A stretch of DNA of 64,000 nucleotides, taken from positions 124,001 through 188,000 of the forward strand of contig CDRNST010000096.1 of NCBI GenBank assembly GCA_977016875.1, read 5' to 3'. The notes under the pieces are model-generated. The model was given only the letters and a program-made list of their open reading frames with translations, did not search any database and had not been told where the DNA came from. This DNA comes from Pavona decussata. Taxonomy: Eukaryota. The position numbers and the translations under genes were made by a program. The first letter of the stretch is position 1. Each line of letters starts with the position of its first letter. Below are positions 1,275-28,849 of the stretch, one piece after another.

Positions 1275-2677
1275 AACTTCGTTCTGTTCAATTCGCATCA
1301 AAGAAAACCCAGTTTTCTTCTTGAAAATTTACTTTTGAAGTGTTTATTAAGTATCTGAGTCCAAAAATACTTCAGTGGATGAATTTTCCTGGTCATGAGG
1401 AGCCACAAAAAAATCTCAAAAATTCGCTCCCTTCAAGTTCTGAATTTGGTGCACTTTTTTAATAGAAAATTTCGCGATCCGGTAAAATACTAAAACCCTT
1501 CAAATTTAGAATTATAGATTGAGGAAGTATCGCTCTAAAACCAGGTTTAAAAAATAGCTTCGGGCTTTTTACCAGCGCCGAGCATTAGCGGCCTCAAAAG
1601 CATGAAAATCGCAATATCAACGGGTAAACAAACTGCACATGACTGCAACCAGTATGAAGAGAAACTATTGAAATTTCATGTAGTTTACCTCGGCATTCGC
1701 CTTTAAACCACCAGTGAAAGGTCATGTTTTGCTAACTGCAATAAGGCATTGTCTAAATAAGATATTTGGTTGTGTGTGTATCCTTTCATTATTATATAGC
1801 CATCTTGATGTGTGAAGTCAACAAGAGAAATTATCATCGCTTATTGCGATGGAGCGACAATAAACTCAAATGACTTACCATCGGACCACTTCTTTTCGAC
1901 TTGAAGATCGTTTAAAATGGAGATGAGTTGGATTTTCTTTGAATTTCGAAACGATTTTTTTGTTTCGAGCTGTCGCTTCGAGATCCGTTCGCAGGATTTA
2001 CTTGAAGCGAAAGCGCTCGTGAATCAATTCGACTCTGTTTATGGCATAAGTCACGTAACAAAATGTCACGCTTTTTTTAATTCACGTGACGTTAGGTTTG
2101 ACTATGTTGGGTGAAAAACACACGGGAAACGTGTGTCCTGACATGCTGAAAACAAAAACAAAAAAAACAAATTAAAAACAATGAAATCTTTACCAAAGTG
2201 TGGACAGGACCGATGATTTATAGTCGAATGTTTTTATCATCTATACACGCCAAAAGGACTGAGCCACAAAGCAAGCCTTGCTAAAGTATGATACTCTGCA
2301 TTTTAACGAGGTAAAACCTAGGGGAACACTTTTCTTGTTAGAACCACTAACTATTAACGCCTTGGTTTTCGCCTTCATGCAAAAGTCACTACGGTCTCAT
2401 CCCTGACTGTTCTCTTGAGGATGGGACAAAACAATGTTATCAGCCAGAAAAAAATCACTCCTCACTGCTGACATGCGCATCCTTGACAAAAAATAAAAAA
2501 ATAATAAAAGGAAAAAAAAAAACTAGTACATTTCTTCGTTTCTTATTTTTTGTTATTATTATTGTCATTTGCTTCATATTTTATACTGTCAATCAATTTA
2601 GTTTAACGTAGTTCCGCTATTGCGCAAATATTTGTCTGCAGCTATGTAAGCCTATGTCCCAATGTAAATTTTCATTA

Positions 2678-2716
2678 TACCTGAAGAAGGCTGGGTTGGC
2701 CAGCCGAAATATAGTA
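2678..2716 (+). ncRNA. Minimal type I hammerhead-ribozyme-like motif, probably in a Penelope-like element end
   Basis: tac-CTGAAGA-A-GGCTGG(gttgg)CCAGCC-GAAA-TA-TA-gta: conserved core, 6-bp stem II, 3-bp stem I, palindromic ATAT in place of stem III. Confidence 0.6.
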
Positions 2717-2859
2717 ACCTTTAAACCGTAATTCTACGTTGTATCGGTCTCTGCTTCTTTTATCATTCTAGTTGGGATCTGAGCTATGCTGACATGTGAA
2801 GGAATATACCATGTTTACTGAATCGCGCACTTTGGTTTTCGGACAACCAAAACTGATAA

Positions 2860-3344
2860 CAGGGGCACCCAACGGATGGTTTTGGTAAATTATCTGTTCG
2901 GAAGGCCCTTAATCCCCTACAATTTTCTGAGGGGAATTTTCACCTCGAACTTTCGTGATATGGAAAATTTAAGGCCTATTGTTTTCGGATTGATAAAAAT
3001 GTCGTTTTGGGGAAAAAAGGTCAGCTAAGATTTTCGGAAAGGAAATAAGACCTAAGGTTTTCGAGAAATGGACAAAAATGCCCTAGTAATTTCGAAAAGA
3101 CTGAAGTTCCCTAGAATGACCGAACAGATAAAAATATTATAGCGCAGCCTAAAATGAACCTACAGAACTTTAAAGGCACTCCAGATAGCCTAAAAAACCA
3201 ACATTACCAAATTCCAATTCGACCTGGAAACAGTGGAGAGAAGAGCCACTCCGTGGATTCCACTGAATTTCCTATTTATTTATTTATTTTTATTTAAATA
3301 GCGTTTCAAAGGATCTAAGAGAAAACTGTCGTTGGGTGCCCCTG
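2860..3344. mobile_element. P-element-like MITE
   Basis: TIRs CAGGGGCACCCAACG / CGTTGGGTGCCCCTG with a perfect 7-bp TSD CTGATAA (2853-2859, 3345-3351). Confidence 0.85.
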
Positions 3345-3349
3345 CTGAT

Positions 3350-4560
3350 AACTCTTCAGGTCGCTCTAGGACGTCAACCCTTGCAGCATCTTGGTTGATA
3401 GAGCGCCGGTATGTGGGCCTCCCATGACGATGTAAAGATGTTTGCCTTTGCTTGCTTCACGGTCAATGCAAACTCCTCTTTAAGTTCGTTTAGCACATCA
3501 ACGGTGTGCTGCGACATCAGAATGTTTATCACTAGAGAGCTGGCGACGCAGCGTGTCTGGTGAACGTATTGCGCGGGACAGGGCGCTTGTCTCATTTGGT
3601 GTTATTTCTTGGCATGTACCTGACAGGAGCCACCCCTTCTCCACCATCAAAGTTCGTCCGTTCGCATTTTCCAATGAGCGTTTTAGCTGAGATCTAATAG
3701 GGCTGACGTCTGTAGATGCCAAGTATGAATTCAGTGCATCTATAGGCCTAAATGTAACTCCTGATGTAATATAATAAAGTTATTTTATGTTCTGAATCTG
3801 AACTGTGCAAAAGGACAAGCTTTTCACACCTAAATTTTAACTCTTACTATCATTTCACACATACCGTGTACTATGAGTAGAGCCCCCCCCCCCCCCTAAT
3901 CCCCTCGGGCTCGATCCAATGCTTGCAGTTTCTCGTACTTTTTTTGGTGTCGCCTCGGTAGCTTCCGCAATAGGCCTGCGGTCACGGCATATACCTATGC
4001 AAAAGATTGCTAAGCTCACTTATTGATTTATGTAGTGATTAGTTCAAAGTTCAAAACACCAGCGACGAAAAAGACAAATACTAGTCACGTTTGGGTTATA
4101 CTCCCACGCAGTCGCTTTTAGGGGAGCAGGTAATACGATGTCCCCTAAAATGACGACTGCGTGGGTCCAGGCTACGTTTGGATTGCACTGTTTCCAAACT
4201 AAATTGCCCCTTTTATTCGCAAATCAGTTACAGAGGAGGCCAGCGTATATGACAAAATTAAGGTGTACTCAGTACACCAGTTTCAAGTTGTCGCAATAAA
4301 GCTAAGGACTCCGACTTGCCTATCCCACGGTCTGCTTTTCTCACCTTGTCAGTAGTGAGAGCCCAGTTAAGAGAGCCCATGCGGATCTCGTCATTGGTTA
4401 GCACTGGCTCTGCACCGGCCAATTTCCCACTTAGATGGGATAGGTTAGACTTTCTCAAAGTCCGTTTTTGTGGGAGTCCAGTCAGGCGCTCAGCTCATGA
4501 CTCCGTCGCCTTGTTGGTCACTCTTTCGGTGCATAAGAAGACGACTTGTGGCAAGTCTAT
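3350..4560 (-). pseudogene. Sola3-like transposase fragments
   Basis: Minus-strand peptides KADRGIGKSESLALLRQ, VSPIRSQLKRSLENANGRT and KQAKANI..WEAHI..SINQDAARVDVLE, with frameshifts, inside the long-TIR element. Confidence 0.55.
4100..4175. repeat. Short palindromic MITE remnant
   Basis: cccacgcagtcgcttttagggga ... tcccctaaaatgacgactgcgtggg inverted repeat. Confidence 0.55.
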
Positions 4561-6945
4561 AATGGTCTACACAGAAATGTAGTCGAAGAAAGAATCACGC
4601 GCGCGCTAAGATAAGCTCAACTTCAGAGTAAACATCACTTATTCGAACATTGCTAGTGTTGTCCCGAAACGTGTTTGTCCTGAGAAATTTCACGAGGTAT
4701 GCATTAAAGGGCCCTAGCCAGCCACGCCTATATATGTTTATATGCAAGAGTTTGGCTATTATATTTTATTCAGAGCATATCGAAATGAACGAAATCACTG
4801 TGAAACTACTAAAGATAATGACACATACTTTCAGGAACACAAAGCAATAAGATTTTGCTTCACCATGCAATATCAATGGAAAATCTCCAGATTCCCGGAA
4901 CAATTTTGGCTTTCTCCCGAAACAGCATTTGTAGAGTTGTCACCCCCCGTGAAAATAGCGGAGGCTGACTAGGGTCCTTTAAGTTTATTGTTGTCTTAAC
5001 GGTTTTGCACTAGACTTGCCCCAACGAAAGATTTGAACGGTTTACTAAAACACTTTTTTTCTGCTTGACCACCTTGTCAGATAATTGAACTGGCATTCGC
5101 AAATCTCACAAGCTGATTTCACCCAGTCACGATCGAAATGGCCGTTAGAATGATTGCAATCATCAGAAAATTCTTTAAACGCGGCGTAAATACAAAAAAC
5201 TACAAGTGTTTTATAATATAGAAATTTTGTATATTTGGTAATTCTTTCAATCAGAACAACGGCGGTGTTTATAAGAACACAACAGATCATTGTAACTAAA
5301 ATAAACACATTTAAAAAAACAAGTGCTACAGATCAGAGAAAATTAACGATTAAACAGAAAACTGAACTTTTTTAAAGATCTTGTTAACGAAGAATTGATG
5401 CACCCAACCCTTTTTCAGGTGCTGTTATCATCAGCGATCACGGAACTCTTTATCTGTCTGTATATCTTTTATCTTGTTTATAGCTGTTATTTATGTTGGC
5501 AAACCGACACATGCAAAAAGAACGCACGTCATTCTGGTTGAAAAAACTGAAAAAGTTCTCGTTAATTCAAAATTTTCTTATATCACCTTCTACCGGTATC
5601 TGTTCAATTTCCTCTCGTTAAAACATCATTCAAGTAATTATCTTTGCTGAATAAACCATTCACGCACACGCCATGACCGTCGTGAAATAAACAACCTGAA
5701 TCGATCACTCAGTGTTCACGGAGAAATTCAAAAGCCGCGTTAATGCGTGAACAGTCACGTTTGCATGTTCAAATAACTTTAAAGGAACTAGTTTCAGGCG
5801 CCCTGATGTTTGGAATTTTTTTTTTTTTCGTTTTTGGCCGTATGTAAGAAAAACCAATCACTCCGAAGGAAGCCGTTGCGTGACCGAAACAAGTACAGTC
5901 AAAAACAGTCGAAGACGGAAGATTATAAAGTCCGGCGGTTTCTGAGATGACTGTGGAGAACTTTAAAATTAGATATTTCTGTTAATATTTACTATGAGCC
6001 GACAGGGTTTTGTTACCGTCAAAGGATTTTTGCCCCTTCAATTGGCATTTGCCAAGTGACGTGAATGCGATAGCAGAAGTCATTGGTCACTTAAGGAGAT
6101 CAATTATCAACCCTTCAAGCTATGATGGCTTTGTGTGGTACACTAAGCCAAGAAACTGATACTTAGATGACATCTTATTCAAGGTGAGCTAAATATGAGC
6201 TTTCTGTTGTTTGGTTCATCGTAATATTGAGGGAAACAAGAAAAAAAAAAAACAAAAGTCTTAGTTGATTTTGACAGAAACAACATGTGTATCGCTTACA
6301 GTTCTTGACAGATAATGTTGCAATTATCGGGATTTTGAGAGCGTTAGTTCTCAGCGCTGATAGAAAGCCCGAAACTGATTTTTAAACCTGGTTTTAGAAC
6401 GGCATTTCGTCAATCAAGAATTCTAAATTTCAAGTGATTTGGTGTTTTACCGGGTAGGGAAACTCTCTCCTGAAAAAGTGCGCCAAATTGAGAATTTCGA
6501 CTGAGCCAATTTTAGTAACTTTCGGTACCTTCCCCACGACCCTCAAAACTAAAGCAGAGATCTATTATTGGCCTCAAACGATTCGTAAACACTTCAACTG
6601 CACATTTCCAAGCTTAAAATGAGTTTTTTGTCGATGCGAATTAAACAGAGCGAAGTTGAGAGAAGGTATGGGACACGTCTACTTTGGGTGCTTTTATAGA
6701 CACTAATGGGCCCGAACAGATTTTATTCAATTTTTCTGGGTTAGAAAAAGAATTCCGAGAAATCAAAACCACCACATTACTAGAACTACCATAGGGTATC
6801 CTTAGTCAATTTGTGACGGACTTTCACTTTTTATCATGTGCCACCCCTCGCTCGGTGTTAGTAGACATTCCCTCTAAAGTCCCAGCGCCGTTCTTTGCTT
6901 ACTGGCGGTTTTTTTCGGGTAACGTTAGTCCTTTGTTAATTAATT

Positions 6946-10340: not shown

Positions 10341-13300
10341 ATGGGAACCACAGCACGGGCTCTGAAACAATGGAGCCTCTCAAAGAACAAGACAATCAAC
10401 AGCTTCGAGAATTGGCGGCAGAATCTGGTTTATACTCTGTTGCTCGACACTAACTTCGCTCCATTTCTTGCCAATGGCGCCACTTGGGAAAAAAAGACTA
10501 GGGCCAGCCCTTACGCGGCTTCACTGATGACGGAGAAACAGTACCGCTATCCCGACGTAAAACAGCTTGACAGAAAGTTAATTTTTTGGAACTAATGCTC
10601 AGGCAGATAGCCAGCTATTGCCCCGTTACATCGGGAAACACCTTGCTAAAGAATTCAACTTCCATTCAGTCTCTTTGGAACATGATATGCTAGCATTTTG
10701 GCTTCCAAATCACAGGAGCCCACTCCCTGGATTTTGCAAACCTACATCTGGAAGCCGACGAATGCCCTCAAGACCTCTTCCAGAGAGTAATGGCCTTTGT
10801 AGAGGGCACCCTACTCCATGCTAACAGCCTTTCCCACCATGATGACGTTACCACTGAGGATGAGGAGCTAACTCCTACACTGGAGAATTTTATCGTACTG
10901 ACCATGCTCAGACTAATTAACCCTGAGTTGCCCAAGCCAGTGAAACAACGATACGGCACCGAATTACAATCACGAACTCTAGCATCCATAAAGCCAGAAA
11001 TATCTCAGGCACTCACCTTCCTACTCGATGAGATACGCACCGCCAACGACGCTAAGATCACGCACACCGCTGTTAATAATAATAATAATAATAACATTGT
11101 AATAATATAGTATTGAAATGATGATTAGTGGTTAGTGGTTATCGCAAACCCATTGGCAACAGATCCCAGTACAAGGAGAGCACACGACCTAACCGTTTCT
11201 CCAGGTCCTGCCCGCTATGTAAACAGGCTAACCGGCCTGAGATCGGCCATTTCCTTAGCGAATACAGTGTCCTTCCAGAACAGGATCATAGGTACATAGC
11301 TAAGGCCAGACAAATCGCTGACATCTTTGATGACCCGCCGATCCTGAAACCAGACCCCATGCAGACGAGCCAGGCAGCAACACTGATGACCCTGGTCCTG
11401 GTCCCTGCACTCATGTCTTCCGCATACAGACCCGCCAGTCACCATACCTTGATACGTTCCATGCACACCACCCAGCGTGCATAACCATTGACAGTGGCGC
11501 CACAGAGAACATGATCCGTCACACCGTTGTCCAGCGTCTCAGTTGCCACGTAATGCCCAGTTCTCAATCCAACCACCAAGCAGATGGCTCTTCTCCCTTG
11601 CACACGGTTGGTGAAGACTGGACATTTACCTTTGAAGGCCTCGTCGTTTAAAATCTCGACGTATATGTACTGGCAGGGACCCCCTTCATGGAAACTAATG
11701 ACATTGCAGTACGCCCAGCCAAGGGACAAGTAATCCTTGGAGACGGCTCCATCCACCACTACGGGTCGCACCAAGCTGCAGCAGTCAGCTCTGCGGCACA
11801 TCGTCCCGTGGTACTATTTCCCCTCCCTCGCCAACAACTATCTGGCCTGGAGAATTCCTTGAAGTAGACTTACAGAGTGATGCACCTCACGACTCAAAAC
11901 AAACTGACACGCCCAGCATAAGACAGCTATCAGCTTCCCAAATGTGGCCAACCCCGGCTATCATCTCCAGCGTCGCAGGAAAGATACGCATTCCCAATCT
12001 GTCTCCCTAGCCACATTTCCTCAAGAGAAATGAGCACTTCTGTCAGGTATGTGCCGTGTACGCACCAGAAGCCTGAAACGACAACCCACAACTGCAAGCC
12101 GCGCCAGAACACAGGCCACCTGTACTTCAGACCGGCACGAAACACTCTGCAAACGTTTGTCTTCACCCAGACAACTTACTTCCTCGCCATATCAGAGCCA
12201 AATTTACCTCACTCCTGGATGAGTATGACCACGTCTTCGACCCAAACTTCAAAGGTTACAATGGCGCAGCAGGTACATTTGAAGCCAGGGTAAACATGGG
12301 TCCTGTGGAACCTCCCCAATGGAGTTACAAGAGAAGTTCAATGCACTAGAAACATTGGGCGTCTTTAGACGCCCCAAAGACATCAACAATGCAGTATCTA
12401 TACCCATCCTTCCTCATCAAGAAAGTTAACGGTGGTCACTGCCTACTCACCGCATTTGCTGACGTTGGTCGTTACAGCAAGCCTCAGCCTTCTCTTATGT
12501 CAGATGTCGACTCCACCCTACGTCTTATTGCCCAGTGGAAACACATCGTCGCGACAGACCTAGCCAGCGCATTCTACCAGATTCCACTTTCAGGTGACTC
12601 TATGAAATATTGTGGTGTTGCCACACCATTCTGGGGAGTGCGTGTGTATGCGTGGTCTGCCATGGGCATGCCAGGGTCAGAGACAGCCCTCGAAGAGCTC
12701 ATGAGCCAAGTGCTCGGTGACCTGTTAGAGGAGGGCATCGTCGCTAAAATTGCTGATGACCTGTACTGCGGAGGCGACTCCCCTGAAGAACTCCTGCAGA
12801 ACTGGACGAAAGTCTTACAAGCCCTCCAAAAATGTGATCTTCACCTTTTCGCATCAAAGACCACCGTCAACCCACAATCCACAGCAATACTAGGCTGGAT
12901 TTAGAACTGTGGCACCTTAAGTGCCAGCCCACACCTCATCGATACCATTGCCTCATGCTCTGCACCCGACACCGTAGCCCGGATGCGGTCCTTCATTGGA
13001 GCTTCCAAGGTGCTCTCCCGCATCATTCCTGGATGCTCTACACTCCTCACTAAACCTGACAACACTGTCGCTGGCCGCGAATCTAACGAAATGATCCAGT
13101 GGACAGATGACCTCAGAACGTCTTTCCGCAATGCCCAGGCAGCCCTGTCCACTACCCACACTATCTCGCTCCTGAAACCTGGCAAACAACTGTGGATCGT
13201 GACAGACGGCGCTGTCCAGAAACCTGAAATAGGCACCACCTCACATGTCACCCGTAATGGCAAACTGCACTTAACTGGATTTTTCAGCGCCAAACTACGC

Positions 13301-26110: not shown

Positions 26111-26570
26111 AATCGTTGCAAAGTACCACATATTTTTTGTAATGATTAGTTATTGGTCCCAGACTCCCCTTGACCAGAACTTTAATTTATTCATACCTGC
26201 GCGGTTACCTTTGTGCATGGACTTCTGTTCTCAAACGTTTCGAAATCGCCACGTGTGCAGATGAAACGGTATTTTACGAGAAATTGGACGCCTTAAAAGC
26301 TTCAAGCAAGGGAAAAGAAAGCAAAACAACATTGTTTATTTCCGACGACTTCTACGATAACGCCAAAATCTGGCTAGGACAAGACGAACACTCGTTCGAG
26401 TCAATGTCAAAGAAAGAGTTTGCAACTGTCAAACGTAAACAGTGGACTCTATGTAAAGTATATGAAATGATTCATATATGAACTGCGGATGTAGATGAAA
26501 GTGAGAAGTGATCATCGCAGTGAATTTTCCAATTTATGCAATTGGAAATTAGAAGCCTGAAAAAAATTCA

Positions 26571-26603
<33 letters not shown>

Positions 26604-26642
26604 GTTACCGGTGCGATGCTCTACCAACTGAGCTATGAAGCC
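26571..26642 (-). ncRNA. tRNA-like cloverleaf (GGT at anticodon position), unit 1
   Basis: GGCTTCA/TGAAGCC acceptor, GCTC/GAGC D stem, ACGGG-TTCGAAT-CCCGT T arm. C33 and an A:C mismatch in the anticodon stem. Confidence 0.8.
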
Positions 26643-26820
26643 ACACATTGGGAGCGAGGTCAATTGTAGGTTCCCATTTTCCCGTGAGAGGAGTGAAACG
26701 ATGTAAAGTATATGAAATGATTCATATATGAACTGCGGATGTAGATGAAAGTGAGAAGTGATCATCGCAGTGAATTTTCCAATTTATGCAATTGGAAATT
26801 AGAAGCCTGAAAAAAATTCA

Positions 26821-26853
<33 letters not shown>

Positions 26854-26892
26854 GTTACCGGTGCGATGCTCTACCAACTGAGCTATGAAGCC
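26821..26892 (-). ncRNA. tRNA-like cloverleaf, unit 2
   Basis: Identical to 26571-26642. Confidence 0.8.
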
Positions 26893-27070
26893 ACACATTG
26901 GGAGCGAGGTCAATTGTAGGTTCCCATTTTCCCGTGAGAGGAGTGAAACGATGTAAAGTATATGAAATGATTCATATATGAACTGCGGATGTAGATGAAA
27001 GTGAGAAGTGATCATCGCAGTGAATTTTCCAATTTATGCAATTGGAAATTAGAAGCCTGAAAAAAATTCA

Positions 27071-27103
<33 letters not shown>

Positions 27104-27142
27104 GTTACCGGTGCGATGCTCTACCAACTGAGCTATGAAGCC
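27071..27142 (-). ncRNA. tRNA-like cloverleaf, unit 3
   Basis: Identical to 26571-26642. Confidence 0.8.
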
Positions 27143-27259
27143 ACACATTGGGAGCGAGGTCAATTGTAGGTTCCCATTTTCCCGTGAGAGGAGTGAAACG
27201 ATGTAAAGTATATGAAATGATTCATATATGAACTGCGGATGTAGATGAAAGTGAGAAGT

Positions 27260-27298
27260 GGCTTCATAGCTCAGTTGGTAGAGCATCGCACCGGTAAC

Positions 27299-27331
<33 letters not shown>
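27260..27331 (+). ncRNA. tRNA-like cloverleaf, inverted copy
   Basis: Same 72-nt sequence on the plus strand, starting exactly at the inversion junction. Confidence 0.8.
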
Positions 27332-28849
27332 TGAATTTTTTTCAGGCTTCTAATTTCCAATTGCATAAATTGGAAAATTCACTGCGATGATCACTTCTCA
27401 CTTTCATCTTTCACAGTGGACTCTGTATCAGGGAAAAATTCAAGATAAAAATGGAAGAAATGTTATTCCAAAAAGTGAGCTCTTCAAAATCTTGACCGAT
27501 GCACATTCTGCTATTGCTCACCGTGGCAGGGATAAGACAGACCATTACGTGCGTGGACATTACTCAGGAATTAACCAAGAGGTAACTGAATTATTTGTGT
27601 CGCTTTGCACTCTACATCAATCTCAACGCAGTGTGACAAGCTATATGAAGAAACCTGTTATTAAACCAATTGCAGCCGATAGTTTCCTGAAGCATGTCCA
27701 AATTGATTTAACTGACTTTCGAAATTTGCCTTGTTCGTGTACTTCAAGTCATAAATGGGTGCTTCACATTAACGATCATTATAGCAAGTATTCTTGGTTG
27801 ATTCCACTGAAGTCAAAGACATGCGAGGAGGTTGTGCAAGCACTGCAAAACGTTTTTTTAATGTTTGGACTTCCACACACCTTGCATAGTGACAATGGAA
27901 AGGAATTTACAGGCAAAAAAAATGAAAGATTGCTGAGAGACAAATTCCATTACACAAGTTCATGGTGCTCCAAGAACGCCCACTACACAGGGGCTGGTAG
28001 AGCGAGGCAATCGTACTTTCAAAGAAAACTTAAGTAACATTCTTAGAGAGAAAAAGGCTGAGCTCAACAGTTGGTGCAGTGTACTGGGTGAAGCAGCTTA
28101 CAAGAAAAACATAACCATACATGATGCAACCAAACAAATTCCATACGTTGCAGTCTTTGGAACAAAACCATGGAAGGAAACAGACAACAATGGTGTCTCA
28201 ACAGAGGATAATGATGAAACATCAACAGCTGTCACACCGTCTTCATCATCCCAGAAAAGGCAGTTAGAAGAGCAATTGGAGCAAAGAAAAAAGATGCAAA
28301 AAACTGTAAATCAAAATCAAGAGCAATATAATGCAAAAATGAAACAAGCCAGGAGTAAAAAAACTTCCTTTAAAGTCGATGACATTGTAGCTATAAAAAT
28401 TGATAAGGTAGATAAGACCTCGCCTCTTCATCCAAATGTCCTCATTGGCAAAGTTCTCCACGTTGAAAATAACTATACGAAAGTTGTTACAAGACATGGA
28501 ATAATTTCAACTTTTATTTCAACAAATCGTTTAAACAAATGCACAGCTACTAGTAATGTTTTTGATTACTCCAAGGAGATTGCCTTTTCATCAGCTGGCA
28601 AACAAGAAATGAATTATAAATAAAAAGATCGGTAACATTGTTCGTGTCCAATTTACTGTCACTCTTCAAGACAATTTCTTAATTAAGTAGCACATTCCTC
28701 TGTATTGTTCTAGGTATCTTTTAACTTAAATGAGTCCATAGCCTTACTTAAGTAAAAGGAAAATCAATGAAAAGAAAATCAATGTAATGTGGCTTAAGGG
28801 TACTCCAAAACAAAACAACCCCAACCTTACACAAAAGCAAACTGAGCAT

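Follow-up and report, generated by a model that had tools for sequence, protein, structure and literature searches.

A 64,000-nucleotide stretch of the Pavona decussata genome (GenBank assembly GCA_977016875.1, contig CDRNST010000096.1, positions 124,001 to 188,000 of the forward strand), hereafter the window, carries at positions 26439 to 27424, counting its target duplications, an insertion built from identical 250-bp units that each contain a tRNA-like sequence. From this copy and its relatives throughout the genome, we conclude that it belongs to a retroelement family that is non-autonomous and non-coding, with a 250-nt unit bearing a tRNA-like gene, and for which a Penelope-like element (PLE) most likely supplies the reverse transcriptase-endonuclease that does the copying and integration. 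Such an enzyme is the best fit because the geometry of the insertions matches the published PLE signature, and this agrees with the original prediction, made from the letters of the window, that the element moves with a borrowed reverse transcriptase. The family is probably a ribozyme-free, tRNA-bearing cousin of the animal retrozymes.

In the window, a single insertion spans positions 26451 to 27409 with a perfect 12-bp target duplication (ACAGTGGACTCT) at its sides, the left copy at 26439 to 26450 and the right one at 27413 to 27424, as had been described and as found again by repeat search. We numbered the unit from 1 to 250 along the reverse complement of 26451 to 26700; position 1 begins CGTTTCAC and position 250 closes with CTTTACAT, the tRNA-like sequence occupies 59 to 131, and a run of seven T, within a 10-bp hairpin, lies at 137 to 143. 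The array consists of two arms of very different length (3.24 and 0.6 units) joined head to head. The long arm (26451 to 27260, sense on the minus strand) was delimited with TRF, which gave a 250-bp period with 3.2 copies and 100% matches, and by BLAST mapping of the unit; the sense 3' end of its head-to-tail units (unit 250, ...CTTTACAT) abuts the left target duplication, and its inner end is at unit 191. The short arm (27258 to 27409, sense on the plus strand), located by inverted-repeat search and BLAST mapping, is a 152-nt inverted copy of unit 57 to 208, 100% complementary to the units, and terminates at the “short” reverse-transcription start site (...CTCACTTTCATCT, unit 208) proposed below. 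Three bases (27258 to 27260) are common to both arms at their junction, and comparison of the filled and empty sites revealed a TTC filler (27410 to 27412, plus strand) that is absent from both the unit and the empty site.

Both ARAGORN and Rfam (RF00005) detected the tRNA-like module of the first unit (26570 to 26642, minus strand); its anticodon is GGT, position 33 is a C, and an A and a B box are present. It is repeated in the long arm at 26820 to 26892 and 27070 to 27142, also on the minus strand, and in the inverted arm at 27260 to 27332 on the plus strand (ARAGORN and Rfam). The hairpin, whose loop is the seven-T run in the sense orientation and whose start falls within the tRNA's 3' acceptor strand, is located by repeat search and folding at 26552 to 26576 (minus strand); its repeats are at 26802 to 26826 and 27052 to 27076, and the inverted form is at 27326 to 27350. 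Across all 962 bp of the window element there are no differences between units. The element has no open reading frame (ORF), and the window copy has no poly(A) or simple-repeat tail, so the earlier statement about the missing tail holds. The description of three units plus partials that landed as one insertion was correct as to the single event, but the right-hand partial is an inverted arm and not part of a direct array.

The insertion interrupts an integrase-like ORF on the plus strand. Its upstream part (26170 to 26450) comes from the ORF list, with the domains identified in a paralog, and its downstream part (27413 to 28037) contains the rve integrase core with an E value of 5.7e-10. Outside this locus, each flank of the insertion matches the genome at a single place, which lies on the same contig 33 kb upstream, and the two matches overlap by 12 bp. 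At this paralog (L056, C96:116831-117517), the 12-mer ACAGTGGACTCT is present once and the ORF, with Integrase_H2C2 and rve domains, is continuous, which makes it a true empty site. These are the only two copies of the host ORF in the genome; the interruption of an integrase-like gene was thus correctly recognized from the start, and the name Ginger2 given to it was not confirmed. The window array is a real, recent insertion.

A search of the whole genome (602 Mb in 1180 contigs) with the unit yielded 177 scored matches from the best 40 of 682 candidate places. The geometry described next was obtained by mapping the unit onto each of 38 insertions covered at both ends, to which all the counts refer. 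Arrays ranged from 1.1 to about 10 units, and the total span, including the arms and any gaps, was above 1.5 unit lengths in 31 of the 38; target duplications of at least 10 bp (11 to 15 bp, with a mode of 12) were found in 28. Insertion as a multimer, proposed earlier from the window copy, is therefore a property of the family. The duplicated targets had an AT content of 0.73 versus 0.61 for the surrounding DNA, and no A-rich or simple-repeat tail appeared in any family copy examined.

Two head-to-head arms, with the sense 3' ends facing outward, made up 26 of the 38 insertions. In every one of these 26, one outer end was located at unit 249 to 253 and the other at 203 to 214 (mostly 204 to 209), and the two positions result in a one-sided tail of about 45 bp (42 to 47 bp); there was no clean case of a short/short or long/long pair among them. 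Another nine were one-orientation, 5'-truncated arrays with the 3' end at either site, or at +18 in L024. The opposite end of these arrays was a random truncation, which in L024, L028, L039, and L052 still abuts a target duplication of 11 to 15 bp. The structure of the remaining three was unclear. Long-end outliers were found at +18, +27, and +84, some junctions contained filler bases, and the ends met the target duplications with 0 to 4 extra bases. Inner ends were scattered over unit 1 to 58 and 109 to 229, with none at 59 to 108, and clustered at the natural palindromes of the unit near 125, 153, and 217 to 229. In one copy of the tRNA-bearing element, positions 1881 to 2702 of L010 (G000:C436, about 2129909-2130730) correspond to a nested 822-bp sequence with unit 121 to 130 duplicated on either side as a 10-bp target duplication, which looks like a second mobile element.

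These features can be compared with those of PLEs, whose insertions are 5'-truncated partial tandems, often with an adjacent inverted 5'-truncated copy and a tail of 30 to 40 bp at one end only (Craig et al., PMC8557442). One purified PLE protein is reported to cleave and extend both DNA strands and to start reverse transcription at two adjacent RNA-internal sites, the genomic tail being the sequence between the two start sites, a signature termed unique to PLEs (Frangieh et al., PMC11167929). The tRNA-bearing family has partial head-to-tail tandems, an adjacent inverted 5'-truncated copy in 26 of 38 insertions, and a one-sided tail between two end sites. The genome contains at least 933 GIY-YIG candidates, many as head-to-head pairs, and an apparently intact PLE (L055, G000:C179:253000-261500) with an ORF of 1041 amino acids (2283 to 5405, plus strand) bearing RVT_1 and GIY-YIG domains. 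The latter is accompanied by an inverted truncated copy of 1342 bp with 100% identity, its target duplication measures 9 bp, an extension of 85 nt is present at just one of its sides, and it gave no Rfam hammerhead. An intact PLE of the same genome thus shows the same insertion geometry as the tRNA-bearing family. As the partner of the family, L055 was ruled out, since it shares no sequence with the unit. In some places, GIY-YIG matches were evenly spaced, by 2833 bp at G000:C1115:1602-7537 and by about 6.8 to 7.2 kb at G000:C19:482195-510075, a regularity that suggests tandem arrays of GIY-YIG-encoding units.

The sequence variation among units provided information about how the arrays arose. 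Relative to the family consensus, several variants are private to one or two arrays and yet shared by all of their units, on both arms, such as 244C in L033 (four of four units) and 235C in L047 (seven of seven); further array-fixed private variants are 115A in L042, 165C in L006, and 246C in L037 and L049. In addition, four diagnostic sites (45, 150, 210, and 232) separate the subfamily of the window copy, which includes L001, L006, and L031, from the rest. All covering units of the window copy and L001, and most of those of L006 and L031, carry them. Since plain transcription and copying cannot spread the mutation of one unit to all the others, the pattern indicates that the information passed through a bottleneck of a single unit and was then amplified in the course of retrotransposition, and unequal exchange is excluded as the spreader because it cannot carry a variant into an inverted arm. 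About one unit of information was the source of each array. It may have been amplified by rolling-circle reverse transcription of a circle or by strand transfer repeated along a terminally redundant linear RNA. The idea of a multimeric or circular RNA, already put forward for the window copy, finds support here, as the array-fixed private variants fit a circular or reiteratively copied template.

Given that the outer ends are constant and the inner ends variable, we interpret the outer ends as the start sites of reverse transcription, and the template RNA is therefore tRNA-sense. Moreover, both start sites are internal, which implies that the template extends past unit 250, either as an RNA longer than one unit or as a circle. 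In the mechanism that we propose, the PLE enzyme would nick both target strands about 12 bp apart, and each 3'-OH would prime complementary DNA (cDNA) on the sense RNA from one or the other of two internal start sites 45 nt apart. Both cDNAs, being antisense, would then run inward and pair where they are complementary, at palindromes or microhomologies, and host repair would seal the paired product. Antisense cDNAs can pair only at a palindrome or a microhomology, and this would explain both the junction hot spots at palindromes and the three-base overlap in the window copy. In the predicted fold, the short start site corresponds to a pyrimidine- and A-rich loop (189 to 209) of the stem CUGCGAUG/CAUCCGCAG, which recalls the stem-loop start site of reverse transcription reported for an anole PLE (PMC11167929).

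A diverged relative was found at L057 (positions 510 to 643), with 76% identity to unit 96 to 228. The T arm, the hairpin of the T run, and the stem-loop of the start site are preserved in it, together with a second hairpin of the same shape and different sequence. This second and older family, with 830 candidate places, has a tandem spacing of 233 to 261 bp, with inverted pieces next to the tandems and ends of two classes that lie about 45 nt apart. We dropped L057 as a test of cloverleaf conservation, its tRNA 5' half being interrupted by an unrelated repeat. Just upstream of the relative, L057 86 to 400 (G000:C20:1480785-1481099) is a 315-nt imperfect palindrome with 77% self-complementarity, and L057 425 to 514 is another repeat that appears elsewhere as inverted pairs about 160 bp apart. 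Regarding public sequencing data, the unit was present in 20 runs from nine studies; three other organism labels occur among these runs, as does one library declared as RNA-seq. The runs labeled as the three other organisms (X16 to X20) contained 83 to 96% of the sampled words of the unit, indicating that the family, in a nearly identical form, is not confined to the sequenced organism. The whole unit, together with the junction of position 250 to position 1, was recovered in contigs of four runs, one of them the declared RNA-seq library, and these contigs are compatible with multimeric or circular transcripts.

Several observations weigh against this reading of a PLE-copied, tRNA-sense template amplified from about one unit. 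The RNA evidence consists of assembled contigs, in which no ends are visible and a circle, a multimer, and DNA carry-over are indistinguishable. A variant of L040 is present in 5 contiguous units of 10 and needs a template switch or a post-insertion change. The motif common to the start sites, ATGAWTCAYTTC..ACTTT(A)CAT, is not significant, as 82 of 1000 shuffles reached the observed score. The seven-T run, which starts 6 nt past the tRNA 3' end and looks like an ordinary terminator of RNA polymerase III (Pol III), should stop this polymerase at a product of ~85 nt, short of the start sites, and for this reason a plain SINE-type promoter role (as in short interspersed elements [SINEs]) is problematic. 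Finally, the unit had no similarity to the one autonomous PLE compared with it (L055), and genome searches with parts of the unit, in which the best candidates were scored, gave family copies alone.

The tRNA-like sequence of each unit is a good match to the Rfam tRNA model RF00005 (65.7 bits, E value of 1.5e-13) and was classified by ARAGORN as Thr-GGT. The cloverleaf has intact acceptor, D, and T arms, one non-standard pair in the anticodon stem, and C at position 33, so the defective anticodon arm noticed at the outset is real. The A box of the module is good and its B box perfect. Folded as a circular monomer, the unit has a predicted free energy of -74.5 kcal/mol (z-score of -6.4), in a structure where the leader (16 to 54) is paired to the tRNA region and the hairpin at 125 to 149 ties up the 3' acceptor strand; enforcing the cloverleaf in the predicted full-unit fold costs about 22 kcal/mol. 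We also considered the leader (10 to 47) as an old reverse-complement copy of the tRNA and rejected it, the similarity in sequence not being significant (363 of 2000 shuffles).

No hammerhead, twister, HDV-like (hepatitis delta virus), or other self-cleaving motif was detected on either strand of the array with Rfam at E values of ≤10. This blank is meaningful because the same type I hammerhead model finds 50 matches above the cut-off elsewhere in the genome, and it bears out the earlier observation that the unit has no hammerhead. The type I hammerheads are often arranged as head-to-head pairs 280 to 490 bp apart, for example, at G000:C8:760893(-)/761378(+), C19:942334(-)/942721(+), and C44:356323(-)/356605(+). 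Hammerhead-bearing elements of the same inverted geometry, either retrozyme-like or PLEs, therefore co-exist with the tRNA-bearing family.

The possible roles of the module can be ranked. A Pol III/TFIIIC role, in which the A box, B box, and seven-T run would serve transcription or an open chromatin, comes first and seems somewhat more likely than processing. Alternatively, the module may be a structural part of a highly paired template RNA, and lastly it may be an RNase P/Z processing signal. This last role was the core of the original prediction, and it found no support here, with no pile-up of junctions at the cleavage sites, the tRNA retained, and a predicted fold that disfavors the cloverleaf. 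Developed in full, the earlier model would have RNase P and/or RNase Z cutting multimers at the tRNA mimic, the units being ligated to circles and copied by rolling-circle reverse transcription, and we regard it as unlikely. It would account for a cloverleaf that scores as a good tRNA in a unit without a ribozyme, for the single unit of information per array, and for the tandem junctions in contigs of RNA libraries, and the short arm of the window copy does begin 0 to 2 nt from tRNA position +1. However, among the 38 insertions the window copy is alone in having an inner junction at 57 to 59, none has one at 131 to 133, and no accumulation of inner ends was seen at the RNase P (unit 59) or RNase Z (131/132) sites. 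Besides, a template cut by both enzymes would lose its tRNA, yet the module is kept in every inserted unit, and the 22 kcal/mol cost of the cloverleaf also speaks against it. Multimeric copying was also seen for arrays fixed for changes that break stem pairs (125A in L044, 109A in L043, and 87A in a block of L040).

The other explanations are less probable still. An ordinary tRNA-derived SINE moved by a long interspersed element (LINE), with the inversions produced by twin priming and the arrays by template jumping, would have the expected head with A and B boxes, and 11- to 15-bp target duplications and 5' truncation are also seen in the target-primed reverse transcription of LINEs. We find it quite improbable given the absence of an A-rich or microsatellite tail, the multimeric rather than monomeric insertions, the inverted structure of two-thirds of them, and the internal seven-T run upstream of the body. 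The two discrete 3' ends 45 nt apart, paired in 26 of 26 two-armed insertions, correspond to a tail signature described as unique to PLEs (PMC11167929). The inverted arms, the narrow size of the target duplications around 12 bp, and the loosely alike termini (ATG(T)AAAGT...) could also recall a foldback or Mutator-type DNA transposon with long inverted arms of tandem repeats. Such an element hardly deserves credence with asymmetric and imprecise ends (203 to 214 versus 249 to 253, and the outliers at +18, +27, and +84), filler bases at junctions, a terminal similarity that is not significant, and nine single-orientation insertions, with a randomly truncated end that still abuts a target duplication in cases such as L024, L028, and L039; neither excision footprints at empty sites nor a transposase gene flanked by these ends was seen. 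We give equally little weight to post-insertion tandem duplication of a monomer or to an assembly artefact. Unequal exchange can expand tandem repeats and could be reflected in the block pattern of L040, but 962 bp without unit differences next to a perfect target duplication leave little time for expansion, and array-private variants shared by inverted arms are impossible by this route. The same architecture is repeated at dozens of loci, and the unit junction was found in contigs of independent runs. Taken against all these, copying and integration by a PLE enzyme is the explanation that we retain as the likely one.

Among known systems, the animal non-LTR (long terminal repeat) retrozymes are close to the family. 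In these, every unit has a type I hammerhead, by which multimers are cut into monomers for circularization by RtcB, and they co-exist with PLEs, by which they are thought to be mobilized (PMC7229834; bioRxiv 10.64898/2026.07.22.740005). Both kinds of element are non-coding, dispersed tandem units (170 to 400 nt in retrozymes) with target duplications (>4 bp in retrozymes) and highly self-paired RNA (as predicted by folding for the family). However, where retrozymes have the hammerhead, the family has a tRNA-like gene and a seven-T run, and lacking a hammerhead it falls outside the retrozyme definition. With PLEs and non-autonomous elements derived from them (MRC1 of Chlamys, for example), it shares the partial tandems, the inverted 5'-truncated copy, the one-sided tail, the two internal start sites, the AT-rich targets, and the multicopy head-to-tail insertions (PMC8557442, PMC11167929). 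Unlike PLEs, it has no ORF, and its tail measures 42 to 47 bp versus the 30 to 40 bp quoted for them. We found no description of a PLE-dependent element or derivative with a tRNA-like module in the searchable literature.

The tRNA-derived SINEs are likewise short and non-coding, with a tRNA-like head that has A and B boxes and a borrowed reverse transcriptase. Nevertheless, they insert as monomers, their tail is A-rich or of LINE type, and Pol III terminators are avoided inside them, whereas the family forms inverted multimers with no such tail and with the seven-T run directly after the tRNA. Without a LINE-type tail and without monomeric insertion, it does not qualify as a SINE. The nearest precedent for a small-RNA gene on an element that does not depend on LINEs is the TRIMp3 group (Helenus, Ajax, and Cassandra), non-autonomous retroelements that carry a tRNA or 5S gene (PMC10886601). 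These differ from the family in being LTR elements, with a primer-binding site, a polypurine tract, and 4- to 5-bp target duplications made by an integrase (PMC10886601), whereas the family inserts in the target-primed manner of PLEs.

Elsewhere in the window, ARAGORN predicted a tRNA-Cys (GCA) at 12090 to 12182 on the minus strand, which at 93 nt is longer than standard and may hold an intron or be a tRNA-like repeat.

The mechanism of PLE transposition is still poorly understood. To our knowledge, in vitro work has covered one PLE enzyme alone, with the use of two internal start sites as its main surprise. The family described here offers a compact, very young, and high-copy natural record of that mechanism, in which every two-armed insertion uses both start sites, one per arm, and the junctions mark where the cDNAs met; a substrate of 250 nt would suit in vitro and cell assays. 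A more speculative and rather unlikely proposal is that of a ribozyme-free counterpart of the retrozymes, in which the tRNA machinery of the host, recruited by the tRNA-like module (Pol III/TFIIIC for transcription, or RNase P and/or RNase Z with an RNA ligase for processing), would make unit-length, possibly circular templates, and a Penelope-type enzyme would copy them round from the two internal sites. If this were true, host tRNA biology would stand in for the hammerhead in the life cycle of the element. More broadly, hitch-hiking on retroelements by small-RNA genes would extend to a third class, with SINEs on LINEs, TRIMp3 on LTR elements, and this family apparently on PLEs. The family also shows that a retrozyme-like tandem lifestyle can do without a hammerhead.

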